Source: Paraphysomonas bandaiensis (taxonomy: Eukaryota > Protista > Chrysophyceae). From it: a DNA stretch of 58,360 nt. The notes beneath the pieces were generated by a model. That model made no database searches. It saw only the letters and a list, made by a program, of their open reading frames with translations, and had not been told where the DNA came from. Location: contig CBFFRP010000248.1 of NCBI GenBank assembly GCA_965644295.1, positions 1-58,360 of the forward strand. Reading direction: 5' to 3'. Of the stretch, positions 1 through 57,683 are shown in pieces. The translations under genes and the position numbers were made by a program. Each line of letters begins with the position of its first letter. Within the stretch, counting starts at the first letter, position 1.

Positions 1-1727
1 ATTCTATGAGTGATTATCCTTGTTAATATTTTCCTACTGACTTCAAGCAGACCAATCGGTCGGAGATTAGTGAGGGAGGATTCTCCTGGTTTCTTGAGAA
101 TGGGAGACATTACCCTGTCTCTCCACCAAATGGGCACATGTTTATGTTTCCAGAGAGATCTGGTGAGGATGTAAGCCTCCCGCTGAACTACCGGTGGCCA
201 GGATTTGACCATGTTGGAGGAGACCATTGAGGGTCCAGGCGCGCGGTTGAAGGAGAGAGAGTGAAGTGTGCAGTAGAATTCATCCTGGGTGATGTCTTTT
301 GCAAGAGTAGATTTGAGTGGTGGCTGCCATGGCCAGAGGGTCTTGGTACAAAGGGCCCCGTGTAACCAGCTGCAGGAAGAGGGATTTTCGAGCGGGGGTG
401 GAGTGGTTCCTGGCATGTCGCTGAGCCCTGGATCAAGAAGGGATTTCCACCATGTAGGGTCCATCCTGGAGCTGCTGTGCTACAGGGTCAAGTCCAGGAG
501 GTTTGGCATGATGTTCACGGAAGTGCGCATTAATGCCTTCATGAATGTCTTGCGGTGTTGTGAGGATGTGTCCGTCAGTTGTTTTCACCGTGGTAAGTCG
601 GAGTGGTGTTTTGACCTTGAGACCAATTTTCTGAAGAATTGCTTGAAGTCTTTCTGCTGTAGCAGTGCCTCCATCTGATTGGTGCGAGCCGTGAGTCTAG
701 TCCGCATTTCTGTCCTGGCTCTTCCATGAAGAAGTCCTCTCAGTCGTGCAAGGCACTTCGGAGAAGGTTTTTCTTGGTGGCTTGCTTTTCGTTCCAACCC
801 AGGATTACCGTCGTGGGTCCGCGTCGCGATGGCTGCACCAGAAGTTGGTGTCTGATATGCCTTTGATGTGGACCCCGAGAACTCCTGCAGATAGGAGTCC
901 CATCGGATGAACCATGCAGTGATGATTTCGTGGGTGGGGGTGGTTGGCCGGGGGCCGCGCCATCCATGCCGTTTGTATCCGGCAGAATTGAACATCTTTT
1001 CGGATAATCCGCAAAACCATGATCATTCCTTCCTGTATTACTCTCATTTCCGGGGAAAAGCCATTCTTGAACTTTGAGCGTTTGCGCTGACAACGTTCGT
1101 GTAGTCGTGTGCTATAAGTACATGCAGGACGCTTCGCCTCGAGCGAAGCCTGGAGGGTTATGTGATGGATGGCCGCTAGTCTGTCGGCTGCCACCCTCAG
1201 GAGGGAGTATGGCAGACGATCCGTTGTCAAATGTGGTAGTTGTGCATGAAGTTGGAGGAGTCTTGCGGTGTATACCTGTACTTCCTTGGAGTCCTTCGGG
1301 TTTACATTGAGACGGGGGGGGATTCGGAGGTGCGACTCAGGTGGTCGAGGGTCAAGATTGACTGGTACAGTGAAACCGACCCAGACCGGTCGATGATCGA
1401 AGGCTGCTGCGAGTAGTGAGGGGGAGTCAAGGCAGCCAGTGTCCGTAACAGACATGTTCGGAAGTAACGGCGTGTGTAGAATATGATCGATCCGCGATAT
1501 TCCTTTGTCTAATCTGTGGAAGGTAAGTGATATGTTTTCCCGGGTAGGAGAAGCTCATGAGAGTGGTGCAGCCAGTTGGAGTTTGTCGGCAAGTGGTCGT
1601 ATGTCTCTGCTCTTCGGATTTGTCTCCATGGAGCTTATTGAAGTCGCCGGCGACAATGACAGTATGGTCCTTGGCTCTGGCTTTAGTGACCCATTTCGTA
1701 AGGATGTTGCATAGGAGCTTGTAGGGG

Positions 1728-4700
1728 TCAGCCGTACAGATACCACGGGACGCTCTCCCTAGCTTGGTCAATTTGCTCCATAATGTGCAAGAGCCTGGCG
1801 TGGATGGCTTCGGGGGTAGATAGACGCTTATTAGTACTAGGGGTGTGCGCCACCGACGTTTTGAACTCTAGTCGGCTCACTAAACCAAGTCCCGTAAAGT
1901 CAGCCTTTGTGAAGGCGAGACGGCGCTTCCAGTATTCGCTGATTATGACTACTGTACCCCCCATTAGTGGGTCTCTTGAAGTCAGTTTTGGCTGCTTGCT
2001 GAGGAAGAGGCATATTCTTGATCCCTGGATTGCATCTTCTATGATACGTGTGAAGAAGTTGGCCTGAGTTTCTGTTAGACGGACATCCTGTAATAGGAGC
2101 ACGTCCAATTTTTGCCGCTTAAAGTGTCGGATGATAGCTTGGACTTTGCCTGTGTGAGATGCCGGATTGCCATTTGTGTTCCATGTGGAGAGTCGGAGTC
2201 CCATGGCTGCTCCCGAGGGAGCCTTGGGGATGCTGCTGGAGGTCTCTGTAGGAGTTCCACTCTTGTCTGCAAGGAGTCTGTCCCATACTGCTTTATTGGC
2301 ACCGCCTATGTCGCTGTCGTACGCAGCCCTGGCTTGGATTAATATCTCAAGTGGCCAGCGTTGATCACACCAGTAATGATGCCCGTAGTTGATGAGAAGT
2401 TCTTCATCCTTAGCAATGGGACGTATTGTACGGACATAGAGGCGTTTATTTTTCGTGACAAACTTGACATTAGCCATGTTTGTGGCTAGGGGGTCATTAA
2501 TATACCCAGCTTCGCATGTTACACATTGTCGGACTTGGTCAAAGCCATCTATTGCGAAGGTACCAGTACTGTCTTGAACTATGTAATCAGAACGCCTTGC
2601 AGACTGACTCAGCTTTGTTAGTGGATAGCGTTTGCCTTTGTACTCAGCAATGATGACGTCTGCTGGGAATGTGTTCTTCGCATAAAGGGATAGTCCTTTG
2701 GCAGTGTTATCGGCGTACGCAATGTAGAACTTTCTTGACCAGTCCTTGTCCCAGCTGGTGGTATCAAGTGCTGGAGTTGGTCTGATCGTTCGTGTGGTCG
2801 TGGATTGGTGTGAGTTGTGAAGGTTCGTTGGTTGGTCACTTTCATCGTAATTTACGACCTTTTTGGCTTTCCGGGTTGGCTGGCATCGACTTGTCAACGC
2901 AGTTTGGGCGTGTTTCAACTGCATCTTCCTGTGCGATGGTAGTGCTCCAGGGGTTGAAGCCTGCAGAATCTGTCGATTTGTTCGTGCTAACTTGGTGCTG
3001 CTGGACGAGGTTGTTCTGGTGCTGGTCGTCTTTGATGTCCTATTGTTGTTCGTGATTGAGTCCGCGGGAAGTGTAGGTGGAGCGATGGGGTCAGACGTTG
3101 AGAGTATACTGGTGGCCAAGGTGTTTTCAAGAGATAGTAGGGCGTTGTCTAGGGCAGTAGAAAGACCGGCAGGGTCTAAGAGGAAGTAGTGAGCATCTTG
3201 TAGTATGACATGGTAGTAGTTATCACGAATAGCGTTCCTAAGTTCCTCCACCTTCCATGCGATGTTATAAGCTACTTTGTCAGTAGGGATACCTACAATG
3301 CTGAGATAATTACCATTTTGCGCCCACGTCGTGCAGGGGTTGATAGTAGAGGCTAAAAGGTGGACCTCTCGCACTGAGAGCCAGTGAGTTATGTCGTCCT
3401 CCGTAGTGTATGTTGTTTTGGCAGGTATTAAAAGTGCGGCCTGTGCGTGATCCAACTTATGTCGTAGTGGCTGAAGTGTGTGATGGGCCATGCACTCCCG
3501 TTGCATTGTGTCGAACGCTTGGGTGCCTAATGTATTTATAAAAGATGCTAGCGTGTGACGGTCCTTGCGTTGTTTGAGGTCTAATTTCAGACAGGAGCGA
3601 GTGTGTCGCCTGCTTGAAGCAAGAATGTGCAGATGATAGAGTGTGCTGTATGCGCAGTATCCATCACTTGGGATATGTTGTTGTGTGCGAAGGGCTGAGG
3701 GTCTGAGGGTGAGGCGATAGACTCTGCTCATGTCGCACATATGGAGCCTGAGTTGTCGACGGTCCGTGGGGTTCATCTGCCGTAGTTGACGTCGAGCTCT
3801 CGGTGACAAGGAGACTGCAATTACTTCCCTCTGTTCCTGTTGCTCTCTTTGCTCATGTAGCATAGATGGTACAGTTGACGGTTCCGAAGTCCAGATGATG
3901 TTGGTGCTCTGTCTGGAGGTCTGGTGTTGTAGAAAACAGGATAGCCGCTCCTGAGTTCGTGTTAGAGCGTGCATGATGGAGGTGGGGATATTTGTTGCAT
4001 TTAGTATGTGAAACCCATGCTGGCTGCGTATGATGTCATGGGTTACCACAGTGTTGGTAGAAGCGTGCACTGTTAGTGCCTGTCTGGAGAATGGTGATAG
4101 CTGTGCCCAACCAGGCGCCAGGTGCGGTTGAACAGCGTCCCATAGTCTGTATGGTATGGAGAGAAGATCGAGTAGCAGTTGGAAATCCTCCGTGTCTAGA
4201 TGTAGTCCTGTGTGTGGATTCGAGGATTCATATTGCATAAGTGTCTTACGGAGAGTGACAGTGGCTGTTGAGGGAATACCCTTTGTCAGGCAAAGGGTCC
4301 GCACATGCCTAGATACAACATGAGTGGAGTCTGCCCAGGGTTTGTTGCCATTCGCGAGATGCTGGGCAACTAGTAGGGCGCTGTGCGTGGTGTCCAATTT
4401 GTGCTCTGGTAGCGTGAATGATATCATGAGATCATAGTTGTCCGTCCTGGAAGCCTTGGCTATGAATCCTTCCCATATGTCTAAACAGGCAGGGGATAGC
4501 ATGTGTGCGTATATTTCTTTTAAAAGGTTTCCCTGTGGGGAGGCAGCAATGGTTTGGGTTTCATCATATCTAACCCAGTTGTTCGGCAGATCGGAGTGAA
4601 AGGGCGTGTGACCCCGGCCCTCTGTGTAGTGTAGGGGGTATGTGGCAATATCCTTGGGCAGTACATCCGGCCTGAGGTCAGGAGTGGTAGTGGAGAGTGA

Positions 4701-5996
4701 GGATGGGCCGTCTGGGGCTAATGCTGGAGTTCCCATGGTGTTCAGTTGAGTAAGGTTGGTGGTAGGTGGCTTCCGTTTGACTGGGAAATAGTCAAATAAC
4801 GTTGCATACGGTGTGGTGGCATCCTTAGTGGGTAAGGGTAATGTGTGGGTGGATTTGCTGGGTCCGTCACCGCTGTTATCGGAGGAGAATTCCTTCCCCT
4901 GAAGGGCGTGGGAGGGATGGTTGATGGACCTGGCACGGTGGACTCCTTGCATTCCCTTGGAATGACATTGCAACACATTTTGGAGACGCATGATGACGAG
5001 GTCAGGAATTCTCTCGAGTAGCGCGTGTAGTTCCAACTCCACCGGGTATTTGGTGTCCAGGAAGAAGTGATCGTTGGAGCAAAACACATCATAAGATGGA
5101 AGGAATTGAGTTTGTGGAAGGAAGGAGGAATAGTGGGTGGACCAGTACGCCCAGTAAGGGAGAGGCGATAGTTTGTCTGGGGGTTTTCTAGGAGGAGGTA
5201 GAGTGTACTGTGTGTGTGTATGACACTGCAGTGGTGTTATGAGTGTGTTGGACAGAGAGAGAGAGCTGGTGATGTGTCCAACAGTACAGGTAGACAGGTA
5301 CATGGACATGGTGATGTGTCCAACAGTACAGGTAGACAGGTACATGGACATGGTGATGTGTCCAACAGTACAGGTAGACAGGTACATGGACATGGTGATG
5401 TGTCCAACAGCAGTAGAGGTATACACGGAATGGTATACATCCTGTAGGACACAGTAGTACAGTAGTCGAGTATACCGTATGCGGAATACAGTGTCTATCC
5501 AATGAGATGGATGGGCTGTGGGGGTGATAGGTGAACAGGGTGAGGGGGTAGCCTGCTGGGTGGATGGACCACAGACAAACCATGTTGGGTTGGGTTGAGT
5601 GGGCGGCAGAAGGCAGCCCTGTTGCACAGTTGAGAGGGATCGAGAGTATTCAGTGATTGCATAGGGGGTCCATGGGGGTCGTTTTCGTGAGCCTGCTCGC
5701 ACGAGCCATGTTCTGAGAGGTTGTAGCCGTAGAAAGCGATGGGTGAGACGAAGTTGTCTGCTGAGGGGATAGCACGTAGGTGCGGTCAGCGCTGCATTGG
5801 TGCAGGCACGTGGTTTAACTGAAGTAGTTGAGTAGGGTGAAGGTTGCAAGGCCAGGCAGGGGGGCTTGGAGCGTGTACAACATGGTGTGACAGGTAATTT
5901 GTCGGAAGCGTGGTGGTCAACAAAATGCAGCAGTAAGGGAGTGTAAAAGGCCCTGGGCACACTGATGTGACTCAGCCACAGTCTCAATAGAGACAT
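1728..5996 (-). CDS. LINE polyprotein N-terminal ORF (1422 aa): OTU-like protease (~3180-3680), SET domain (~2370-2730), APE N-terminal half
   Basis: OTU-like IPSDGYCAY...QDAHYF. SET: KGLSLYAK...IAEYKG...AGYINDP...NVKF...IRPIAKDEELLINYGHHYW. Then MGLRLSTWNTNG. The true start may be downstream of 5996. Confidence 0.85.
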   Translation of the reverse strand: MSLLRLWLSHISVPRAFYTPLLLHFVDHHASDKLPVTPCCTRSKPPCLALQPSPYSTTSVKPRACTNAALTAPTCYPLSRQLRLTHRFLRLQPLRTWLVRAGSRKRPPWTPYAITEYSRSLSTVQQGCLLPPTQPNPTWFVCGPSTQQATPSPCSPITPTAHPSHWIDTVFRIRYTRLLYYCVLQDVYHSVYTSTAVGHITMSMYLSTCTVGHITMSMYLSTCTVGHITMSMYLSTCTVGHITSSLSLSNTLITPLQCHTHTQYTLPPPRKPPDKLSPLPYWAYWSTHYSSFLPQTQFLPSYDVFCSNDHFFLDTKYPVELELHALLERIPDLVIMRLQNVLQCHSKGMQGVHRARSINHPSHALQGKEFSSDNSGDGPSKSTHTLPLPTKDATTPYATLFDYFPVKRKPPTTNLTQLNTMGTPALAPDGPSSLSTTTPDLRPDVLPKDIATYPLHYTEGRGHTPFHSDLPNNWVRYDETQTIAASPQGNLLKEIYAHMLSPACLDIWEGFIAKASRTDNYDLMISFTLPEHKLDTTHSALLVAQHLANGNKPWADSTHVVSRHVRTLCLTKGIPSTATVTLRKTLMQYESSNPHTGLHLDTEDFQLLLDLLSIPYRLWDAVQPHLAPGWAQLSPFSRQALTVHASTNTVVTHDIIRSQHGFHILNATNIPTSIMHALTRTQERLSCFLQHQTSRQSTNIIWTSEPSTVPSMLHEQREQQEQREVIAVSLSPRARRQLRQMNPTDRRQLRLHMCDMSRVYRLTLRPSALRTQQHIPSDGYCAYSTLYHLHILASSRRHTRSCLKLDLKQRKDRHTLASFINTLGTQAFDTMQRECMAHHTLQPLRHKLDHAQAALLIPAKTTYTTEDDITHWLSVREVHLLASTINPCTTWAQNGNYLSIVGIPTDKVAYNIAWKVEELRNAIRDNYYHVILQDAHYFLLDPAGLSTALDNALLSLENTLATSILSTSDPIAPPTLPADSITNNNRTSKTTSTRTTSSSSTKLARTNRQILQASTPGALPSHRKMQLKHAQTALTSRCQPTRKAKKVVNYDESDQPTNLHNSHQSTTTRTIRPTPALDTTSWDKDWSRKFYIAYADNTAKGLSLYAKNTFPADVIIAEYKGKRYPLTKLSQSARRSDYIVQDSTGTFAIDGFDQVRQCVTCEAGYINDPLATNMANVKFVTKNKRLYVRTIRPIAKDEELLINYGHHYWCDQRWPLEILIQARAAYDSDIGGANKAVWDRLLADKSGTPTETSSSIPKAPSGAAMGLRLSTWNTNGNPASHTGKVQAIIRHFKRQKLDVLLLQDVRLTETQANFFTRIIEDAIQGSRICLFLSKQPKLTSRDPLMGGTVVIISEYWKRRLAFTKADFTGLGLVSRLEFKTSVAHTPSTNKRLSTPEAIHARLLHIMEQIDQARESVPWYLYG
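5267..5410. repeat. 42-bp tandem repeat (~3.4 copies) in LINE 5' region
   Basis: The unit TGGTGATGTGTCCAACAGTACAGGTAGACAGGTACATGGACA starts at 5267, 5309, 5351 and 5393 (partial). It is frame-preserving (TCTVGHITMSMYLS). Confidence 0.95.
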
Positions 5997-6169
5997 TGGG
6001 CTTGGAGCTGGTTAATAGAGTGAAACTTTATGTTGGACTGTATTTGCCATCGTAGGGCAGAGAATTTTTAACATGTAGACTTATTGTTTGGATTCTTATT
6101 GGAAGAAGCCTTGCCCATATTGAGGAATGTCATGAATACCTACTATTTTTCGCAGGATATAAGATATAC

Positions 6170-7711
6170 CAGGGCCTGGTAACCATTAATGGCCCATTAA
6201 TGGTATTCCAGTTCCCCGCAATTATAATGGCATTAATGGCCTATTAATACCTACTAACTTAAAGTAGATAGCACCACTCATATAATAGATGGTGTTGTGC
6301 TCCCTTAATTACTAATTTTTAGTTAAATATTAGCAGACTACAAATTTTAACTACTTCTCGCTCTCTACTGGCACATCAGGACCTTCTTTCAGGGCTTCAT
6401 GGAGGGTATAAACATCCCACAACATGGAATTGGCTCGTAGAAATAGCAACGATTCTAGACGGAATGGATTCATGTCTCTACGCTTATAGGTGTCATAATT
6501 AACTTTGCACGACTAAAGAGCCTCTCAACAACATTAGATTGTGCTTCAATATGAAGCAAGCAGCGGTAGTTGGACTCATATGTACCAAGTCGAGCTCTCT
6601 TGGTGACCTCGGCGCTGTCCAGAACACGCTGTGCAAAATCAGTTCCTTCAATCTCGTCCTCGTTATTTCTGTCGGGTACACCAACCTCCATGGATGAATC
6701 CAGTTGCAAATGTCTAACTGCTCTTCTCTCATTGCCTGTCAACTCTCTTTCATCGTTCCCTTGAATTTTAGCCACTGCCTTCTCAATATTTGCACTGGCA
6801 ACAAAATGCTTGCATTCGGGGAAAGGTATGAATGCAGCTCTGGAAATTCTGGCGGGCTTGGTACAAATTTGTTCCATCTCTTTGTAAGGCCAGCGTAGCA
6901 CTCTCTAGAATTTTTCAAGTTGCGTCAAAAATTGTTTCAGCTTTCAAAAGTTAGTTGGAGTTAGAATCTGGAGTAAGGAGATACTTTCTTTCTTATAAAA
7001 GACAATAAATCGCCAACGTGAAGTCTTTCATTTCCCGAAATTCTCTCGAGTTCCTCTCGCCAAGAAATATTTGGCGCCCTTCTTGGCTTTATGATTCTCA
7101 CAAGTCGTGTAACCTCGCTGTATACTTTGTTTAAGGCGATCATTGCACAACAAACAAATATGATACAGAGCACTGAGAGAATTCTCTGAATCCACTCGGA
7201 AGTCGGAAGAAGACTCAGACTGTAAATTACACTGCCATCATCGTTGCTAATATATGCTATGTATGGTATATGTACAGAGTATACTTTCTTTGCTTAGTTA
7301 GCTTCTTTCAACTTTGGGGAAAAATAGTGTTTTTATGAATGTTTTTAGGCGAAATATGCATATTTTCAATGATTATTTTAGAGTTTTATGGGTACGTTGC
7401 TATGAATATCGCACAGGACACTATTCTCTGACTCTAGAATGCATTTAGAAGACAATGAACAAAGTTGCCACAGAGTGCCAGTAGAGTTGCATGAACATTG
7501 TTGTCTAATATTGTTTAGAGTTTCTTCGGAGTGTAGAGGAGATACTATACTCTTAAGAACACTCAGTTCTATGTATAGCAGTATAGATCATTAATGGTAG
7601 TCCTGTTCCCGGCAATTATAATGGCATTAATTAAAAATGTCCCGGCAATTATAATGGCATTACCATTAATGACCCATTAATGCCATTACCATTATTGGTT
7701 ACCAGGCCCTG
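6170..7711 (-). mobile_element. hAT DNA transposon, internally deleted non-autonomous copy (family A, copy 1)
   Basis: TIR CAGGGCCTGGTAACC...GGTTACCAGGCCCTG with a perfect 8-bp TSD AGATATAC (6162-6169 / 7712-7719). Subterminal CCATTAATGG / ATTATAATGG repeats. Transposase remnants include the hAT C-terminal QSNVVERLFSRAKLIM and an N-terminal CxxC...GY...H BED-like finger. Confidence 0.93.
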
Positions 7712-8287
7712 AGATATACTTTTACATAGCTGCTTAGGAACACAAAGAGCAAGCTACGAGCAGTTCGAGATCCTGTCGTTACTGGATACAGGATTTAGTC
7801 TGTATAGAAGTGATATTGCGAGGCATAACGATTGCAAGAATTTTCTCCGATTACGATTGTACAACAGTCCCCAACCTTGTCAGTCTTAGCACTGCTGATA
7901 TGCACAGAACTGTATAGCATTTCTATTTATAACGTATTCTATTGATAAATTACAACAGGTTCGAAGACATGCTCTGTGGTATGTTTCAAGCGATTCCTAG
8001 AAGTGTCAATTTGACCTGGTTGACGTACTACAACATAATTATACCATATGTGATTTGAAGTGGAATATTATTTAAAAGAATTAACGTTTATTCCAGTTCG
8101 TATTCAAGTCTATTTCAAGTTTTCCAGACAGCGTACATCAATCACAAGAATCGATCAACTCGGCATGCGTGTGGCCCTCACATTAAGACAGTATCATTGC
8201 AAACAATAACAGTGTGGTGACAGGTCCATGCGGTACATCTCTGTGCATAGAGTCGTATTTCTATTGAGCAATATGATCAGCACTGCC

Positions 8288-8406
8288 ATGGACGGTCATA
8301 CAATGCAAACCGCACCCGCTCTCGTTCCGCTCGCGGAAGTTAAGTTGCATCTGGCCCGGTTAGTAGTACGGTGGGTGACCACGTGCGAAGTCCGGGTACT
8401 GTCCGT
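8288..8406 (+). rRNA. 5S rRNA (single dispersed copy)
   Basis: 119 nt: ATGGACGGTCATAC...GGAAGTTAAG...GGTTAGTAGTACGGTGGGTGACCAC...GTACTGTCCGT. The terminal helix ATGGACGGT/ACTGTCCGT pairs, the A- and C-box-like elements are intact, and a T-run Pol III terminator follows. Confidence 0.95.
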
Positions 8407-8769
8407 TTTTGTCACGTATTTTATTGTAGCATTCGAGAATATATTGAGAACAACGACTTTAAACGTACAGTATGGCTAAGTGTTCAGTGCTGTGAGTGTG
8501 GTGTGAGATGAAGATACCAGCAAGATACGGCACGACTCAGAGGCAGCATGCCTGATTGACACCATCATGATGCTGTCCATGTGGAATACGGCCCCTACAG
8601 TTGTATTTTGTGTTCTTATACCATTCTGCACTGTGTCTGTATACGTATGTATATGTATATATGTATATACCTGTACGCCTACACGTGTACGTCCCTGCTG
8701 TGCATATACACGCACATCTATGTACAGACAGCCTCATAGCATACATCAACATAACAATCGACAGTGATC

Positions 8770-9791
8770 ATGCGCCGGCTCCTGTCCCAGTCCAGTGTGC
8801 ATGCAGCAGTGTCATTGGGTCTCTGTGTCCCTGTAGTGTCTCTCAGTGACCCTCAACAACCCCCCGCTGTCCCTGCTGGTTCTCCTGCCTCTGATAAACC
8901 TCCTGCTCCTGCTCCTGCGAGGTGCCCTTTCGCTCATCTATGGGAATGGACGGGCTCTCTGTCCCTTCCTTTCGGTCACCCCTCTATCACAGACATCAGA
9001 GAGGATCCTGTTGAGTATAACAAGAGCCACTATCCCTCTGGACTTAACGCCATCTTCTTATCTGATGATGTTAAATCATATGAGAAGACATTCGCAGGTG
9101 ATGAGGGACTGCTTGAGAACCCTCAGGATAGAGAGATCGTCAAGTACGCCAACAATATTATCAGTACGCTGCAGGAGCATGGTCTTAGGAGAGGGAGTAG
9201 TGTGGCTGATATAGGGGCAGGAACCGGTGAGTATATTAGAACTGTATTCTGCTTACACTCTAATTGGAACGGTTCAGGATACATTACTAGGATGCTTGTG
9301 TCAGCTGTAGGGACTGAAGGTGAAGTATGGGCACAGGAAATATCACCAGGGTTCATGTCTATGTTGGAGAAGATGAAGACCAATGAAGACCTCGAAAACA
9401 TGCACATAATTGAGGGAAATGTGAAAGATTGCGGATTGCCTGCTGATTCACTTGACCTGGTTCTCGTATGTGATGTATACCACCACTTTGAGTATCCCCG
9501 CACGATGTGTCGGTAGGAGACTGCGACTGTGCTTTGCTGGTCTGACACTTTTTCAGGTCCATTCATAGTGCACTTAAGAAAGGCCCCAAGAAAGGCAGAC
9601 TGGCAGTTATTGACTTCCACAGGGATGATAGTAAGATATGGAGCCGCCCCAAAGGCTGGGTAATGGAACATGTCAGAGGCAACCAAGAGGACTTCAGAAA
9701 AGAAATCGAATCTGCAGGATTCCGCCTTGTGAGTAATCCAGCCATCCCTGGAATTACAGAGAACTACTGCATGATATTCGAGCCTGTATAA
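8770..9791 (+). CDS. Class I SAM-dependent methyltransferase (3 exons; introns 9227-9277 and 9513-9556)
   Basis: Motif I VADIGAGTG; WAQEI; DLVLVCDVYHHFEYP. The spliced C-terminus reads GRLAVIDFHRDD...WVMEHVRGNQEDFRKEIESAGF...ENYCMIFEPV*. Confidence 0.9.
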
Positions 9792-25325: not shown

Positions 25326-28300
25326 TCAATTAGTTTTAGCGACTAATTTTCTTTTCTTTGGAGGAGGCATGACCGTTACACCATAATCCAAATCCACGCT
25401 AACATCCTGTAAAGACAATGTCAGAAACACAAATCATTCTAATTGAACAGTCGAGGCACTGTGTACGAATGTATGCCATAGAGATAGCATTGCAGCAGCA
25501 AAGTACCGAAACGGCACATGTTAACAAAACAACAGCTGTAAAGCGCAACACACACAACATGACACCGCGAAAACAGTCGAGCCAAAACGGCGACGACCTC
25601 CTTCCTATCAATTTTCCAGAATCGTAACGAGACAATTGAAACTGAAGCCCAAAGGCATTCAAAAGCTCTGACTAAATTCTGGACACACTGACACTAAATG
25701 TGGCTGATAACTTACCATGGGAGCATCAACATCAAGGTAGGAGTGCAGCCTTCTGGAGTTATTGTCCTCTGGCTTAGGAGGCTGATATTCCACACTGGGT
25801 CGAGGTACTTGTCCTCTTCCACCATCGCCAAAACTATGTCTCTGCGGTGGACGCCGCTCAATACCCCTTCCTCCACTCGAACCCTCTTCGCTCACATCAC
25901 TATATCTCCTCTCCCGTGGAAAATCTCCACTGAACCGGCGCCTATCCCTCTCTCTGTCATCAAAGCCGTAGTCAAATCCACGACCTCTGCCTCTTCCCCG
26001 GCCCCCAGATCTCCTACCACCACCCATTTGGTGGTACTGCGGAGGAGGGGGGACTTGGCCACCAGGCAGTGGCATGTGGGGCGCTCCCATGGAAATAGCA
26101 CCACCACCCGGCACTGACGGAAGAACATGGACGATATGTTGTACAGGCCCTCCCGCACCTACCAAACGGCTCTGTGCGTCCTCATACACGTCCTTCACAC
26201 TATGCAACTCCAATCCGGCGCTCGTTTCGACATCAATGGGAGGTAATGGACGATTCACAAGATCCTCCGCGTTAAAACGGGCACTCATATACTGCTCGGC
26301 CACACGGACCAAGCGCTCAAGAGCCACGTCCGGATGCTTATTCTTAATATGTTTAGAGAGGAATTCCTTAGACTTGAATAGTTTGTTGCACCAGACTAAG
26401 CCACACCGAGCCTTACCGTCTGGTTGCATATTGCAATTTTCATTTGTGACTTGTTCCATAACCTTTTCCTGAGCTCGAGAAATCGCAAGTGCATCTTCCT
26501 CGTCAACAGTTCTCGGTAACTGCTCTACACCATCCGTCTCTATAGATTGCTGCTTTCGAGCAACGCGACGGCGCAGATCTACAATGAAATCTGCAACCCG
26601 ATTATCAAGATTTATGGAAGCGGGATTACTTCGGCCACGGAATGGCCTCGTGACATCTACCTTCACAACTCTGATAGCCACTGGAGGAGTGGCTCCGGGT
26701 ACCTCTTCAACGCCGACAGCTTCATCAGTGCTATTGGCGACTGACTCATCTGCAGCAGTAGCAACATCGACATCTGTCCCAGCAGCAACATCGACATCTG
26801 TCCCAGCAGCGGTAACACTTTCACCAGTACCCGTGGGCTCAGAGTCTGTATTGTCCCCAGCAGGGGGATCACTATCTTGTGGCCTCGACTCAACCCCCGT
26901 CTCCTCAGTACCTTCTTCACCGAGAGAAACTTCCGAAGCTTGAGTATCTTCCTCTGCACTACCAGCTCTAGACCTCTTTTGTCCTTTCGTTTGACTCGGA
27001 TTAGAAGGCGCAGCAATTGTGGGGGCGCTACGCATGACAACACCAGACGACATTGCAAGGAGATGTGCCTCATCTCTGAAGCGCTTCCCACTATAATACA
27101 CAAAGAAATGCACCCGGCGCAGATACGCGACAGCAATGTCTAACTTATCCGAACATTGTAACTTGAGAGGTCCATCAGTCCCTTGTTCTTTTTCCATCTT
27201 AAGAAGGACGCCTAAGGTAGTAGCAAGATTGCTCTCTGTCGGAACACCTCTTTCTTCGTCCAGCAAACTTGCTAGTTCAATGGCACGTACCGTGTCAAAC
27301 CCCACTCGCCTGGTGGCGCTGAAGAGGTCAGGTAGAGGCGCAAGCTCTTTTACAGTATGAATCGTACACTGCAGTTTGAATGATATACCGGCAGCCGGTT
27401 CTCCAGTCGTAGAATCCGATGGAACAGGCCCAGGAATAGGGATACGCAAGTCACGAAGGCATCGAAGAGCCCCTGGAAGGTGGCAATCCTCGGATAGCGT
27501 CACCCAGGCTGTACGATCAAAACATTGCCTACCCAAACGGGAATTCCAGGTTGGCTGTGCCAACGAAAGTCGCTCAAGGGAGCCCACAGGAGAGTTATTA
27601 GATGCCGCATGGGCCAAAGCAGCTTTAACAGCTTGAGCCAGAATAGCCCGTGAACAGGTTGCGGGAATGCCTGTCAAGTAAAGAGTACGTTCACGATGGC
27701 CATCGAAGTGGTGACCAGAAGCGGGACTAGCTGCAGCAGTACCTGTATCGCAACTAATGTGAGAGATTTGTGTTGATCGATAAGTTTAGCTTACCTGCAG
27801 AATGTACACCAGGACTAGGAGTATTTGAAGGGCCAGGAGCAGAGGAAACTACAGTATCTCTGTCCTCTTTATTATAGTCCTTAGTTTGATCCATTTGGGC
27901 TTCGGCACTATCTGAGTGGACCGAGTTTACTTCTTTGCCTTCGACAGAGGCTTCTGGTGGAGGGGGAGGGGCCTCTTCTGTGTCAGCCACACGCACAGCA
28001 CCCCTGCGATCCGGCATATACAGTCGGAAACTTTCCACTGCCGCCACAGGATTGTCAACTATCATTTGATGAATGCGCTGGCTCTCTTTTGCTGCCCATG
28101 CCCTGGCTTCCGCTTCCATATTCTGCTGTACCAAAGGGTCATAACGCTCCCTAAACCACTCCTCGCACTTGTTCTTCTCGAAGAAATAGTTCGACATATC
28201 TTTTGTGTATTGAATTCTGTATTCATTATAACGACGTTGAAACTCTTCTGGGGGCGCATCGTCGTCGGGTTGAGTTAGAATAAAATTTTTGTATGACTTC

Positions 28301-28860
28301 ATGGGATCTAGACGAGGACGATTAAATCTAGGAGGAGATGCACTCCTCGCAGATCGAAAAGATCCATGACCGCCGTGTCCATCATACCTGGCTAGAAACA
28401 AACGCATCAGCTCAAGATACAAATGGCTCACACACATACGTGGAGGTCTGCCCCTACTATTGTTGTAGTCTATGTCTCTGTGGTGTCTACGGCCATGGTC
28501 ATAGGATCTCGCCCGGTCTCCATCACCATGGTGCGCATGTCCGTAGCCTCTACCAGACCACTCCCTGCCTCTGCCCCTCCCACCTGCTCCTCCTCCTGCC
28601 CAGTCTCTTGATCGAGGAGGGGGTCTGCGGCGGTACTCTCCTCCACGCTCACTGTCTCTATGGCTATCTCTGACATGGCTGTGGCTGGTATCGTCAGCGT
28701 GGCTGTCTCTGTGGCTGTCAGCAGCAGAGTGATCATCGTCCTCTCGGCGCCGCTTCTGAACCACTCTCCCGAAGCTGTCAACCTCAGGATCTGGCTATAA
28801 CCAACATACACCCAACAATTAAACTTGATATCAAAGTTTGATATTGTGCTATATTACCAT
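25326..28860 (-). CDS. SRRT: SERRATE/ARS2 RNA effector (multi-exon; ATG-only first coding exon)
   Basis: MKSYKNFILTQ...RYNEYR...FFEKNKCEEWFRERYDP; LDIAVAYLRRVHFFVYYSG; C2H2 CGLVWCNKLFKSKEFLSKHIKNKH; C-terminal SYLDVDAP. Model: ATG 28858-60, intron 28795-28857, then PDPEVDSFGR. Last exon DVSVDLDYGVTVMPPPKKRKL* follows intron 25407-25715. Confidence 0.93.
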
Positions 28861-32929: not shown

Positions 32930-35668
32930 ATGGAGTACGCGGCGTGTATCGGGCACTCAGTGTCAGTGAAGGGGTATCAGCAGGGCAATGTACTGCACCT
33001 GACTCGCAGTGTTCGCGATGTGGACCGCGACTCGAGCAGATCCTTTCACTGTCCTCTGCTAATAGACACTCCTTCCGCTCAGCTCAGACCAGTGGGGTCA
33101 CCTATTGAGGTATCGAAGAGCGATATAGACGCATGCTCTGTGTCGTCACTGGTGCAGGTGAGAGCTGCGACTGTGGACGGGTCCTCTGCTATAGAGGTGT
33201 ATCGCGGGGGCTCATTGACCCTCAAGATAGATGCCACCGAGATACATGAGAAGATAATCGGTGATCAATGGTTCGGTGGGTACAGTTTTTCTCCGGATGA
33301 CAAGTATTTTGTGTATGTCGCTGGTAATAATAATGTGCGCATATTTGTTCTTAGTTTGATTTCTTTAACGCAGTCCCCAAGAAACCAAAAGCCACAAGTT
33401 TTTTTGATGAGCTCAAAGCAGAGAGTAGTGTTGGTATGCACTTGTTATATAATGTGGTACATGGTAATACTAACTGCACTGTGCACAGGCACTAAGGTAC
33501 ATGACGCCAATAAGTTCGACGCTCAGCAGGATTGGGGAGAAAAATACCGTGGAGTAACAGCTCTGTCGCTTTTTGTGTTGGACTTGTGCACAGGGGATAT
33601 CCGTATGGTTCGCGGCATATCTCCAGTGGATACAATTGGACAACCAGCTTTTAGTCCTTGTGGCAGAGGGTTGGTATACACGGCTTGGCGATCACCATCT
33701 GGTGCTCCCCGCAAGCTCGGCATGATTTATTGTTACCAACGTCCATGCAGACTCGTATATGCTCCCGCGGAGACATGGACAGCGTGTTGCGATGCAAAAG
33801 CAGAAGAACTTGCTCGATTACATATTTCACTCACTAGTCACATGAAGCTGGCCCGCTTCCCTCGATTTTCTCCAGTTATGGGCACTGAAAGTGGCAGCCT
33901 GGTGTTCCTCTCTTCTGAGCATGGGTTTGACATTCACAATTCCTCATGTGCACTCACTGCATTTGACTGGGGGAAGTTTGTTTCTGAATATGAACAGTCA
34001 AAAGATAATTGCACTGATATGTCAGACTTGTGCTTATCTTGTTGTCGGACGGTCGTGGCTGACTGCTCTGACCCAGTTGTAATTGCGCCCATGCGGGAGA
34101 ATTGTCCAGTGTGTGTTGGCCCCTTCCCGTTCCCTGGATTGTACTGTAATAATCTACCTGCCCGTCCTTTTGTTTGCAATGAAGTATTGCTTCTAGATGC
34201 ACAGTGGAGATCTGTCGCCGTCACTTTGGCGATTGATATCTCATCAAACCACATCAGAGTGGTCTCGTATTCTGGAGATAATATTCGGCTGTCGGCCCCG
34301 TTTACTTGCCTCTCTGCTTCTACTTCGTCGTATTCTGTTCCCTCGGATCCTTATAGAGGTACTTTTTCATGGTTGGGATCATGCCCATTTTCTACTTCTG
34401 TGGTGGATTGTCACCCTTCGCATGGCGTTGCTCTCCTGGCTTCTGATCCCTCCTCCGAGCCAGTGTTACTACATTTCAGAACAGACCATGTGATATGGAA
34501 ACAGAGCATGAATGATGAACCTTTTCCAGTATCGCGCTACGGCCCTTTTCCTCCTATGGCTATAGCTGCACTGAAGCTCTCTAACAAGGAAGATGTAAGA
34601 AATGCGCATGTGCGCCCATCGTGTGCTGCTGGGAGCCGGCTATCCAGTCATATTCTTTATACCAGAGTGGAACCCGTAGGGGATGCTTCCTCTGCCTGTC
34701 CTGGACACGACGTCATTGAATCTATTCTGCTTCTTCCTCCTGTGCGTCAGGGGAAACTACCTCCTTTGGTAGTGTCCCCACATGGCGGACCGCATTCGGC
34801 TTTTACAACCGCGTATTCACCGCATTGTACGTACCCATGTCTTATTATTCCCTCAACTAAGTGGCGATACTTATTGCAGATGCTGAGTACATGTGTAGAG
34901 CGGGCGGATTTGCGGTACTTCTAGTTAACTATAGGGGTTCAACGGTGGGTCCAGATTCAAAATTAAAATCCCCATTTCACTTATTCTCACGATATAATAG
35001 GGATTCGGAAGTCATGCCCTGTTTTCTCTTCCCGGCCGAATTGGTACAGTGGACGTATCAGACGTCGTATCCGCCACGCAGTCGATAAAGAACCTTTCTC
35101 CCGCTTTGGTCAGCGGAGCAGCTTGTGGTATTGTTGGGGGTTCTCATGGGGGCTTCCTGACCACTCATATTGTGGGGCAGTACCCTGATATGTTTCAAGC
35201 TGCGGCTGCACGTAATCCAGTAACTAACTTGGCGTCCATGTTTACAACTAGTGATATTCCTGACTGGACTGTGGTGGAGGCTTCTGGAGTGGGATCTTTT
35301 AGCTTTGATAGATACCAGGTGCCGGACGAGAACAGACTAAAGGAGATGTATCTTTGTTCTCCTATCAGGTACGAAGTGAACGATATAATACCGTGAGAAT
35401 ACCTTACGATGTATGTACCAGGTATGTAGGTGCTACGATAGCCCCTGTTCTAGTATGTCTAGGGGCGAAAGACATGCGCGTCCCCTACTCTCAGGGTATG
35501 GAATACTATTATGCGCTCAAATCGCAACGGTCGGATGAAACTGAAGGAGAGGAAACCGTGAAGCTTAGAGTTTATCCAGAGGCGGACCACGCCATCGATA
35601 TACCGGCCAGTGAAGCTGACCAGTGGATCACAATCATGAATTGGTTTCGTCGTTTCTTAGCTGCATAG
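32930..35668 (+). CDS. APEH: Acylamino-acid-releasing enzyme (peptidase S9C), multi-exon
   Basis: QDWGEKY, RKLGMIYCYQRP, FPGLY, PHGGPHS, VNYRGS, catalytic GGSHGG, RNPVTN, SDIPDW, DMRVP (Asp), ADHAI (His). Confidence 0.93.
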
Positions 35669-54617: not shown

Positions 54618-57600
54618 GTGATAGCAGCTATGCGGAATTACAATGATACTTCCAGCAGATTTCGTAATGCTGTACATAGGCAAGGAATGATAATAAATAA
54701 TTGTGGTGATAAGATTAATGTGGAAATGGTTTTATTTGATTCCGGATCATCTTCGGATAATTTTATTTCATCAAATTTTGTTAAGAAGTGTGGGGACAAA
54801 TTGTTAAAGGATATGGTACATAAAAAATTGAGGGTCAAAGTAGCAGACGGACATCAGATTGAACTAAAAGGGTATATTCCTGTTACAATTGCTTTTGAAG
54901 ATGATGGTAAGACCTACAAAGCACAACTTTCACTGTATGTTTTGGACGGTTTGGCAAAGGACATTATTATAGGATTACCGGCAATCTGTGAGCATTTTTC
55001 CGAACTATTTATGAATATGATTAAGAAAGCATCACTGAGTGTTGAACAATCTGTTAATTTAAGTGAAATAGAAGTTCTTGCCAATATTGGGGATGACATT
55101 GACGAACTTAGGAGATATATGTCGTCAGGACCAGTCTGTAATCCATGGGAGAATCCAATTCCAGAACAGTCAGAGGAAGATGATATGATCCCTGAACCAT
55201 GTAGTTTTGGAAGTTTAGTGACTTTTTTGGAACAGTCAGTGGATGAGGCTAGGGAGAAATATTTTAGTGAACTAGAATCAAAAGTACATCCTGATTTCGC
55301 TCAACAAACTGATATATTGAGAGTTTTGAGAGAGGATGCAGTTGATGTTTTTGTTCCTAGAGAGTGGACTGGAATTCAGCATGTTCCTGAGTTAAAATTA
55401 AAGGTGAAAAGTACTATTCCTGATAGAATTAAACCCAAGAATATGAGAAGGATACCACCTATGTTATATGAACGTACGAAGGAGGAGTTCAATAGGATGT
55501 GCGGATACTTTTATCGTCCCAGTACGAGTCCTTATGCATCTCCAATTGTAGTAGCACCCAAGGCTACGAAACCTTTTATTCGAATATGTGGTGATTACAG
55601 GCGTGTTAATTTAGAGATTGAAAGTCCGCATTATCCCATACCAGATGTTATAAAAGAATTACATAAAGCAGCTGGGTATAAGGTGTTCATTGATTTGGAT
55701 ATATGTAATGCTTTCCATGGGATTAGACTTCATGAATCAGTTTCAGCACTGTTGTCAGTTCAAACTCCATGGGGTCAGTTCGAACCAAAGTTTATGCCAG
55801 AGGGAGTTTCTCCGGCAAGTGGAGTTTTGATGCATGTAGTGTCTGATATTTTCAATGAATTCTCAGAGTGGATGGTAGTGATATTTGACAACTTACTGGT
55901 GTTAGCGCATGACTATCAGGATGCTATTGAGAAGTTCAAGAAAGTCATTAAAAAATGTACTTATTATAACGTCGTGTTGAAATTGTCGAAAAGCAAATTT
56001 GGCTATTCATCAGTGGAATTTTTCGGCTATCTTTGTAAGGACAACACTTACCAATTAACTGAGGCCCGAAAATTATCAGTAACTGCAATTGAATTTCCAG
56101 AAGGGAAAAACAAGACGAAACAAATGCAGAGATTTCTTGGAGCGGCAATATATTTTAAACCTTTTATTCCGTTATATAGTGACCTTACTCATAAGTTACA
56201 TGACATGACGAAGAAGAATTTTGACTGGAATGAGAATTGTTGGAAAGTAAATTACAGGGAGGAATTTAGTAGATTTAAAGAGGCGATTTTAAAATCTCTT
56301 ACTCTGTATCATCCCGACTATTCTTTAAGATGGATCTTGATGACAGATGCTTCGTTTTATGCATGTGGAGGTGTGTTGTTACAAATTTTCATTGACGCCA
56401 ATGGTCAAGAATTCTATCAAGTAATTGCAATGGTGTCGAAGAAATTTTCGGAACCAACATTGAAGTGGTCCACTATTGACAAGGAGTGTTTTGGAATATT
56501 CTTTTGTGTATATGCTTTGTCGTATTATTTGAGAGGTAAAAAGTTCACGATCATGACGGATCACGCCAATCTTAAATGGATGGAAGTTTCGGTTGTTGAC
56601 AGAATAGTACGCATGCGGATGTTTATACAGAACTTCAATTTCGACTTGCTTCATTTCAAGGGAAAGTTAAACAGATTTGCTGATTGGTTATCTCGTAAGG
56701 ATCAGGAATCGGCTGTGGCTCATGTTATGTTGTTGTCCATAAGTATAGACTGTTTTCCTGAGGAGAGTCTAATATATGGGGAAATTGTTATATTTGAAAA
56801 TACAGATTTGCTACCGGAAGATCAACTGATTGAATTAAATTGTATAGGAGAATGGAGTTCTGAATCAGATGACATAGCATGTTGTGCTGTATTTTCTTCA
56901 GAGATCATAGCAGCTCTTGAAGAACTAGCGAGTCAAAATTTACGGCCTAAATCAGTTAAGGAAGCGTTTGATTTGGTTCATAACGGTCGTATGGGGCATC
57001 ATGGTACTAAGAGGACATGGTTGAAATTGTCCAAAGTATTTCCTGGACATACAATAACTACGGAAGTTATTCAAGATTTGATTGATCGTTGTCCAATATG
57101 CCAGAAACTGAATGCGGGTATGAGTACTTCATTACAAGCGCCGATTAGAGCACTTGACTCAGAGCATTGTCGTCAATTTGTAGGTTTTGATACGCTTACA
57201 GTTTCACCGCCGGACAAGTATGGACATTGTTGTATACATGTTGTCAAACAGATGCCTTCTCGTTTAATCGGTCTTTATCCAGCTAAGGATTACAAAGCGG
57301 TTGGAGTTGCACGTGCATTGTTCAGTTATTTTGTTACATATGGAATATCAGAAGTTATGATATCAGACCCTGGATCTAATATTACAGCAGAGGTTGTACA
57401 ATTGCTTTTGAAATGGTTTGGTGTGCGTTTTCGAATGTCTTTAGTAGATCGACATGAATCAAATATGGTTGAGAGAACTCATCAAGAGACGCTAAGGTTT
57501 CTAAGTGCATTGGTGCATGATGAACGTTTACAGGATGTATGGGGAGATCCAGAATGTTACTTACTGATTCAGTTCATTCTTAATGATGAAGTTAGTAGTG

Positions 57601-57683
57601 AGACTGGTTTGTCGCCATTTGAGTTTACATTTGGTACCGCTGCTATGCCATACTTTAAATTAACGGATATAATGTTAATGTGA
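54618..57683 (+). CDS. pol: Gypsy Pol: aspartic protease, RT, RNase H, integrase
   Basis: PR LFDSGS; RT YASPIVVAPK, RICGDYRRVN, DLDICNAFH, MPEG, VIFDNLL; RH TDAS, DKEC, TDHANL, ADWLSR; IN HHCC (VHNGRMGHHG...CPICQK), SDPGSN, VERTHQ. Confidence 0.95.
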   Translation: MIAAMRNYNDTSSRFRNAVHRQGMIINNCGDKINVEMVLFDSGSSSDNFISSNFVKKCGDKLLKDMVHKKLRVKVADGHQIELKGYIPVTIAFEDDGKTYKAQLSLYVLDGLAKDIIIGLPAICEHFSELFMNMIKKASLSVEQSVNLSEIEVLANIGDDIDELRRYMSSGPVCNPWENPIPEQSEEDDMIPEPCSFGSLVTFLEQSVDEAREKYFSELESKVHPDFAQQTDILRVLREDAVDVFVPREWTGIQHVPELKLKVKSTIPDRIKPKNMRRIPPMLYERTKEEFNRMCGYFYRPSTSPYASPIVVAPKATKPFIRICGDYRRVNLEIESPHYPIPDVIKELHKAAGYKVFIDLDICNAFHGIRLHESVSALLSVQTPWGQFEPKFMPEGVSPASGVLMHVVSDIFNEFSEWMVVIFDNLLVLAHDYQDAIEKFKKVIKKCTYYNVVLKLSKSKFGYSSVEFFGYLCKDNTYQLTEARKLSVTAIEFPEGKNKTKQMQRFLGAAIYFKPFIPLYSDLTHKLHDMTKKNFDWNENCWKVNYREEFSRFKEAILKSLTLYHPDYSLRWILMTDASFYACGGVLLQIFIDANGQEFYQVIAMVSKKFSEPTLKWSTIDKECFGIFFCVYALSYYLRGKKFTIMTDHANLKWMEVSVVDRIVRMRMFIQNFNFDLLHFKGKLNRFADWLSRKDQESAVAHVMLLSISIDCFPEESLIYGEIVIFENTDLLPEDQLIELNCIGEWSSESDDIACCAVFSSEIIAALEELASQNLRPKSVKEAFDLVHNGRMGHHGTKRTWLKLSKVFPGHTITTEVIQDLIDRCPICQKLNAGMSTSLQAPIRALDSEHCRQFVGFDTLTVSPPDKYGHCCIHVVKQMPSRLIGLYPAKDYKAVGVARALFSYFVTYGISEVMISDPGSNITAEVVQLLLKWFGVRFRMSLVDRHESNMVERTHQETLRFLSALVHDERLQDVWGDPECYLLIQFILNDEVSSETGLSPFEFTFGTAAMPYFKLTDIMLM

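Follow-up and report, generated by a model that had tools for sequence, protein, structure and literature searches.

A probable OTU-fold cysteine peptidase domain in the open reading frame of an APE-type LINE from Paraphysomonas bandaiensis

Does the open reading frame (ORF) of a retrotransposon encode a peptidase of the type that acts on ubiquitin, and what might such an enzyme do for the element? This question is raised by a 58,360-nt stretch of the genome of the chrysophyte Paraphysomonas bandaiensis (GenBank assembly GCA_965644295.1, contig CBFFRP010000248.1; hereafter the window), which begins within a copy of a long interspersed element (LINE). An original prediction, made from the sequence of the window, had placed an OTU-like cysteine protease or deubiquitinase domain in the LINE protein, together with a SET domain. 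All coordinates given here are window positions, and the element and its OTU-like domain lie on the minus strand. The segment is, in our judgement probably, a highly divergent OTU-fold (clan CA) cysteine peptidase with Cys49 and His204 as its catalytic pair, which forms one module of the ORF of an APE-type LINE.

The minus-strand translation of positions 3100-3800, which lies in frame within a 1422-aa ORF, reads QQHIPSDGYCAYSTLYHL, ITHWLSVREVHLLAS and YYHVILQDAHYFLLDPAGL. The strings on which the original prediction was built (HIPSDGYCAYSTL, HWLSVREVHLLAS and HVILQDAHYFLL) are all present in this translation, and the span that it proposed (3180-3680) is bounded by the Cys and His loops; the full domain extends over approximately 3102-3800, and its fold-matched core comprises residues 25-212 (window 3165-3728). 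Motifs were examined in an alignment of 12 sequences from three element subfamilies with 40-65% identity (A1). In A1 and its extension to a distant relative (A4, described below), the Cys loop follows the consensus IP[SAG][DNK]GYCA[YL], in which P, G, Y and C are invariant, and the His loop contains an invariant AH[YF]. The pattern [DN]G.C ... W.{4}E[ILVM] ... H[YF], which was set post hoc with the sequence already in view, was found in all 12 element domains and in four of four canonical OTU genes of the same genome, and it was absent from 200,000 shuffled versions of the segment and from the six-frame translation of the remainder of the window (99,175 aa), which served as background. The order of the three motifs is the same in the element domain and in the host OTUs, and the distance from W to His is similar (57 residues versus 47-58). 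The distance from Cys to W is longer in the element domain (79-90 residues versus 54-62 in the host OTUs), and a helical insertion of approximately 25-30 residues is therefore placed between the Cys loop and the W motif.

The fold of the domain was assessed using structure-based and feature-based searches. An AlphaFold2 model was built on A1 (predicted local distance difference test, pLDDT, 69.7; predicted template modelling score, pTM, 0.66). In this model, Cys49 stands at the N-terminus of helix 49-64, and His204 opens strand 204-208 of a four-stranded sheet, directly following the hairpin strand 196-201; the modelled placement of the two residues is the papain-like arrangement. Foldseek searches with the model returned OTU structures for nearly all of the top 50 matches (best E 0.035), and the VIA-align search also returned OTU. 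In the shape search of the ESM Atlas, the first match was 'Ubiquitin thioesterase OTU' (PF02338 in 100% of the members), followed by otubain clusters, and in a language-model feature search OTU was the sole named family, with 49 of 100 matches. In a structural alignment taken as an example, residues 27-212 of the model were superposed on residues 19-158 of the Taggert vOTU. Cys40 and His151 are the residues that we take to be catalytic in nairovirus vOTU, and an offset count that starts at the ends of each aligned range would place Cys49 and His204 within about one residue of them.

It is highly improbable that the domain is unrelated to OTU, that is, that it adopts another clan CA fold (Ulp1/C48, Josephin or MINDY) or belongs to an unrelated alpha/beta domain in which the motifs resemble those of OTU by chance. 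Every one of the top 12 of 48,161 chains in the structure searches was OTU, and the lists contained no Ulp1, Josephin or USP chain; the independent Atlas shape search and the language-model search named only OTU or otubain; and the order and spacing of the three motifs agree with those of the host OTUs. The individual scores are modest, and the fold call rests on the agreement of the four structure and feature searches, which converge on the OTU superfamily (clan CA; PF02338 / MEROPS C85-like) with its papain-like alpha+beta fold. The OTU-fold, cysteine protease-like nature of the segment that had been predicted is thus borne out by structure, but it is not recovered by any sequence method, including the Pfam OTU model.

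Several results weigh against an OTU peptidase at this locus. Pfam searches with the whole ORF and with the segment alone gave no match to PF02338 at E<=10, and PDB searches using phmmer (single sequence) and hmmsearch (two profiles) gave no OTU chain. Profile-profile comparison (hhalign) with four canonical OTU genes of the same genome produced only short, non-significant pairings, in which the Cys loop of the element was paired with the host 'DGNCLF' loop (E 0.23) and its His loop with the host 'NHY' loop (E 0.07). Position Cys-3 is occupied by D, N or K, so that the Asp of the DGxC motif is replaced by Asn or Lys in relatives. The position His+2, at which the third catalytic residue (Asp/Asn) was sought, carries Phe or Tyr in every sequence. 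An Asp/Asn at His+2 is not universal in OTUs, because A20 uses a distant Asp; two canonical host OTU paralogues likewise have no D/N at this position (HYG). Conserved D/N residues occur at His-2 and His+5 of the element domain, and either of them could be the third catalytic residue.

Searches of larger collections recovered the element itself. When 1.84 billion representative proteins were searched exhaustively with a HMMER profile, only two fragments of the same element and no OTU were returned, and word-based homologue searches, performed with the domain profile and with the full protein restricted to the domain, returned only fragments and copies of the same element family. A Pfam match to Ish1 obtained with the segment alone was regarded as chance, and the PDB sequence matches 6gxs (a repeat-lectin artefact) and fft3/ORP1 (noise) were dismissed. 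The PDB sequence search also listed 6k6l, a 'pseudo deubiquitinase', at an insignificant E of 0.51.

The element that carries the domain is a single-ORF APE-type LINE (non-LTR retrotransposon) with an ORF of approximately 3000 aa. Positions 1-6070 of the window correspond to positions 3177-9195 of a full-length copy on contig C440 (L031; open frame 3021 aa) at 99% identity in blastn. The contig start cuts the window copy inside the N-terminus of the reverse transcriptase (RT), and the 5' end of the element lies near 6070. The 1422-aa ORF of the window extends from the N-terminal region through a degenerate upstream domain, the OTU-like domain and SET into the first part of APE. Further downstream the frame is broken near 1841 and 1636, where tblastn of the L031 protein switches frame (1842/1840 and 1637/1635), and DNA contigs from run X1 differ from the window copy by 1-2 nt indels at 1840, 1560, 1526 and 1194. 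The frameshifts of the window copy lie below approximately 1842, and the OTU-like and SET parts are intact. Pfam analysis of three long ORFs (3021, 2795 and 3300 aa) gave the order SET, APE (Exo_endo_phos) and RT (RVT_1), and an RNase H 'FTDGS' motif is located downstream of RT. In the Pfam scan of the whole window ORF, PRDM2_PR was also matched beside SET.

Assignment to the APE-type LINEs follows from an APE domain N-terminal to RT in one ORF, from many dispersed copies and from open frames of varying length. The domain order of the family is N-terminal region, one or two degenerate OTU-like copies, the conserved OTU-like domain, SET, APE, RT and RNase H; the original prediction was correct in placing the OTU-like domain in the same ORF as SET, APE and RT. 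The copy number is high: the OTU-like segment has at least 79 matches in the 62.5-Mb assembly, approximately 38 of which are 97-100% identical and free of stops in the domain, and other subfamilies are approximately 65% and 42% identical. A giant variant of the element (L032; G000:C644:2500-12400) has an open frame of 3731 aa, in which SET is matched twice and an additional Cys-loop motif (TPGNGFCG) is found far upstream. The N-terminal coding region of the window copy contains a perfect 42-nt tandem repeat (3.4 copies, 5267-5410), which encodes repeats of VGHITMSMYLSTCT and differs in copy number from that of L031.

Conservation of the putative catalytic residues was evaluated at increasing evolutionary distance. 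The invariant residues of A1 include I43, P44, G47, Y48, C49, A50, Y51, W140, L141, S142, V143, R144, E145, H197, A203 and H204. A third homologue search yielded a distant LINE relative in another Logan assembly, P0004 (L062:659-10837 (+)), with a 3392-aa ORF that shows 32% identity over SET and APE and has the same SET-APE-RT order. Ahead of these domains, P0004 carries three tandem OTU-like domains (aa ~270-495, ~650-870 and ~975-1195), each of which has P-x-K-G-Y-C and H-[YF] and either matches the A1 profile or shares its motifs. In an alignment of the window family with the three P0004 domains (A4), at 14-18% identity, the only invariant columns were P44, G47, Y48, C49, W159 and H204, and W140 was kept in at least 90% of A4. 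Retention of Cys and His at this level of identity is the pattern expected for a Cys-His catalytic pair. The original prediction had named conservation of Cys, His and Asp among element copies as a check, and a lack of conserved Cys and His as grounds for abandoning it. Because Cys and His are conserved among copies, across subfamilies and in the distant relative, those grounds do not apply; the Asp of DGxC did not hold.

The OTU-like domain is under purifying selection. The dN/dS ratio in the domain was 0.06-0.21 for pairs of intermediate divergence, and one pair of copies (L039/L041) differed by 37 synonymous versus 8 non-synonymous changes in the domain. Identity between subfamilies was 43-65% in the OTU-like domain, 50-70% in SET and 50-75% in APE, compared with 25-48% in the linkers and the upstream domain.

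The upstream domain is a degenerate duplicate of the OTU-like domain, and some subfamilies have a third OTU-like copy still further upstream. Profile comparison of A1 with the alignment of the upstream copies (A3) gave E 1.5e-4 and a probability of 51% over 161 columns, extending from the Cys loop to the post-His helix. The AlphaFold2 model of the upstream domain (pLDDT 42) was too poor for a fold search. The upstream copy of the window subfamily contains no Cys and has HGFHIL instead of HYFLL; Cys is present in one subfamily only (GRGFCSV), and HYFLL is kept in two subfamilies.

These duplicates bear on the possibility that the SET-proximal domain also keeps an OTU-like fold while being catalytically inert, so that it would be a pseudo-enzyme that binds ubiquitin or serves as a scaffold; the upstream copies appear to be of this type. 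The loss of Cys from the upstream paralogous copies in most subfamilies would fit such a role, as would the residues at His+2 described above and the variation in P0004, in which neither the Cys-loop Asp nor E145 (invariant in the subfamilies of this genome; Q in P0004) is conserved. We nevertheless consider an inert domain distinctly improbable. Cys and His persist in all three tandem domains of P0004, a scaffold would not need to retain the nucleophile, and constraint is much stronger on the SET-proximal copy than on the degenerate ones, which argues that the Cys and His of the former are kept for catalysis. The domain is real and under selection, and it is probably an active OTU-fold cysteine peptidase.

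What an active peptidase would act on was considered along two lines. The domain might mainly be a polyprotein-processing protease, similar to tymovirus PRO or arterivirus PLP2, which cuts the product of approximately 3000 aa in cis or in trans, for example separating OTU/SET from APE-RT-RNase H. The giant ORF encodes several enzymes joined by long linkers of low complexity, it has no 2A-like (NPGP) skipping motif that would otherwise separate the modules, and viral OTU-like proteases perform both polyprotein processing and deubiquitination. One conserved 'ITLGG' is located between RT and RNase H (L031 aa 2371). However, no GG, GA or GS dipeptide is conserved across subfamilies in the linkers flanking OTU, SET or APE, and the remaining conserved GG sites are inside the folded APE, RT and RNase H domains. 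In addition, self-processing does not need tandem arrays of two or three OTU-like domains, and ORF2-type proteins of LINEs normally work in cis as a single polypeptide. On balance, processing is unlikely to be the main function, and the alternative offered in the original prediction, in which the protease frees SET from APE-RT, found no positive support, with no conserved Gly-Gly-type site in the linkers around OTU, SET and APE. As a separate observation, the segment 'QRAITLGG[ED]' (L031 protein aa ~2365-2372) contains the one conserved Gly-Gly that is not part of a folded domain and may represent a ubiquitin-tail-like cleavage site.

The second line assumes that the OTU-like domain is catalytically active in the manner of its relatives. 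By analogy with cellular and viral OTUs, we infer that it would cleave ubiquitin or ubiquitin-like isopeptide bonds and thus act as a deubiquitinase (DUB). Its likely targets would be the element's own giant protein or ribonucleoprotein, which would thereby be shielded from degradation; alternatively, it may act on chromatin at the integration site jointly with the adjacent SET domain. A conceivable but rather doubtful extension is that the LINE carries its own ubiquitin and chromatin toolkit, consisting of an OTU array (one domain active, the others degenerate or substrate-binding) and a SET methyltransferase. The substrates of such a toolkit would be either host restriction factors or, where the target DNA is nicked, histones or repair factors; during target-primed reverse transcription the element would thereby rewrite local chromatin or avoid ubiquitin-dependent silencing or degradation. 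The virus-like counter-defence kit that the original prediction saw in the OTU-like and SET domains is likewise conjectural.

Contigs from polyA metatranscriptomes with at least 99% identity cover positions 3442-3956 and other parts of the element, which is suggestive of transcription. Because the data are contigs from RNA libraries, transcription is suggested rather than proven, and these contigs may include DNA carry-over. The RNA-library contigs are far deeper over the 5' part of the element (4850-6070) than over the OTU/SET part. Near-identical element DNA (window 100-6070) is present in marine, seawater and hydrocarbon metagenomes of several studies. The source is a marine eukaryote with few introns.

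The features of the window are listed in Table 1. Outside the LINE, positions 54618-57683 (+) contain a 1021-aa ORF with RT, RNase H and integrase zinc-binding domains, which represents the pol of a Ty3/gypsy-type long terminal repeat (LTR) retrotransposon and is unrelated to the LINE. Among the host genes, the SERRATE/ARS2 homologue occupies two neighbouring ORFs, with an intron or a frameshift as the probable cause of the division, and the gene with the acylamino-acid-releasing enzyme domain is located near it.

Table 1. Positions of the LINE, its domains and motifs, and host genes in the window
Feature	Position	Strand	Basis
LINE copy, 5' two-thirds	1-6070	-	blastn against full-length copy L031
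Intact part of the element ORF, 1422 aa	1728-5996	-	ORF list
OTU-like cysteine peptidase domain (putative), 233 aa	3102-3800	-	Alignment A1; AlphaFold2 model; OTU matches in Foldseek, VIA-align and Atlas; dN/dS
Putative catalytic Cys codon (C49, IPSDGYCAY)	3654-3656	-	Invariant in A1 and A4; N-terminus of model helix 49-64
Central W-x4-E-[VLM] motif (HWLSVREV)	3366-3383	-	Counterpart of canonical OTU WGxxxE[IL]; same spacing in 4/4 host OTU genes
Putative catalytic His codon (H204, DAHYF)	3189-3191	-	Invariant in A1 and A4; start of model strand 204-208
Degenerate upstream duplicate of the OTU-like domain (pseudo-OTU)	3909-4604	-	Alignment A3; hhalign of A1 against A3
SET domain, ~135 aa downstream of the OTU-like domain	2382-2696	-	Pfam PF00856, E 4.8e-9, window-ORF residues 1101-1205
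APE-type endonuclease domain, frameshift-interrupted	1470-2186 (approximate)	-	tblastn mapping from L031 residues 1262-1499; Pfam PF03372 in intact copies
Host genes: SERRATE/ARS2 homologue; acylamino-acid-releasing enzyme N-terminal domain protein	25659-28764; 32930-34924	-; +	

Peptidases of this kind have been described in other mobile elements. OTU-like proteases occur in Helentrons, which are rolling-circle elements, and in Ginger1 DNA transposons (PMC4067079, PMC2836005, PMC6431247). Helentrons carry an APE endonuclease, and a proto-Helentron of Phytophthora has a SET ORF (PMC4067079, PMC2836005); the accessory modules are therefore the same as those of this LINE. Both systems resemble the present element in having an OTU-type protease with conserved catalytic residues inside a mobile element. 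In contrast, they are DNA transposons in which OTU is recognised by Pfam/CDD pfam02338, whereas the present element is an RT-based LINE without a PF02338 score, and its domain stands in a tandem array fused in one ORF with SET-APE-RT. Cysteine peptidases of the ubiquitin or ubiquitin-like protease type inside a LINE ORF are represented by the Ulp1-like domains of NeSL/Utopia non-LTR retrotransposons (PMC4640811) and, according to a figure legend, by a Josephin-related protease in Chlamydomonas Dualen (PMC9977147). These belong to other families (C48 Ulp1 and Josephin) and to clades with restriction-like or dual endonucleases, and none is reported with SET or a tandem array.

The domain also differs from the viral OTU proteases (nairovirus L-protein vOTU, arterivirus PLP2 and tymovirus PRO), with which it shares only 6-10% sequence identity, by the helical insertion between the Cys loop and the W motif, by the lack of Asp at His+2 and by its location in a retrotransposon rather than an RNA virus. 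With the cellular OTU deubiquitinases (PF02338; otubains, PF10275), of which the host genome contains roughly ten canonical genes, it has in common the fold found by structure searches, the three motifs and the W-to-His spacing. Unlike these enzymes, it is missed by the Pfam model and by profile-profile comparison, its Cys-to-W segment is longer, and its third catalytic residue is off the canonical position. No report of an OTU domain in a LINE was found in the full-text literature, the coverage of which was incomplete, so that absence is not proven. Cysteine proteases in LINEs and OTU domains in DNA transposons were already known; what appears to be new is an OTU domain in a LINE.

LINEs are usually viewed as minimal elements that encode an RNA-binding protein, an endonuclease and RT. 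The accessory cysteine proteases known from them are of the Ulp1-like (NeSL/Utopia) and Josephin-like (Dualen) types only, and OTU domains are known solely from the DNA transposons Helentron and Ginger1. The finding brings the APE-type LINEs into the connection that is repeatedly seen between mobile elements and the ubiquitin system, and provides a tractable family (233 aa with a clear Cys and His) in which to ask what deubiquitinase-like domains do in transposition. This domain family has no Pfam model and was overlooked by sequence annotation; similar modules may therefore be missed elsewhere. If the element does use its OTU array and SET domain as a ubiquitin and chromatin toolkit, it would be the retrotransposon counterpart of viral counter-defence based on DUBs.

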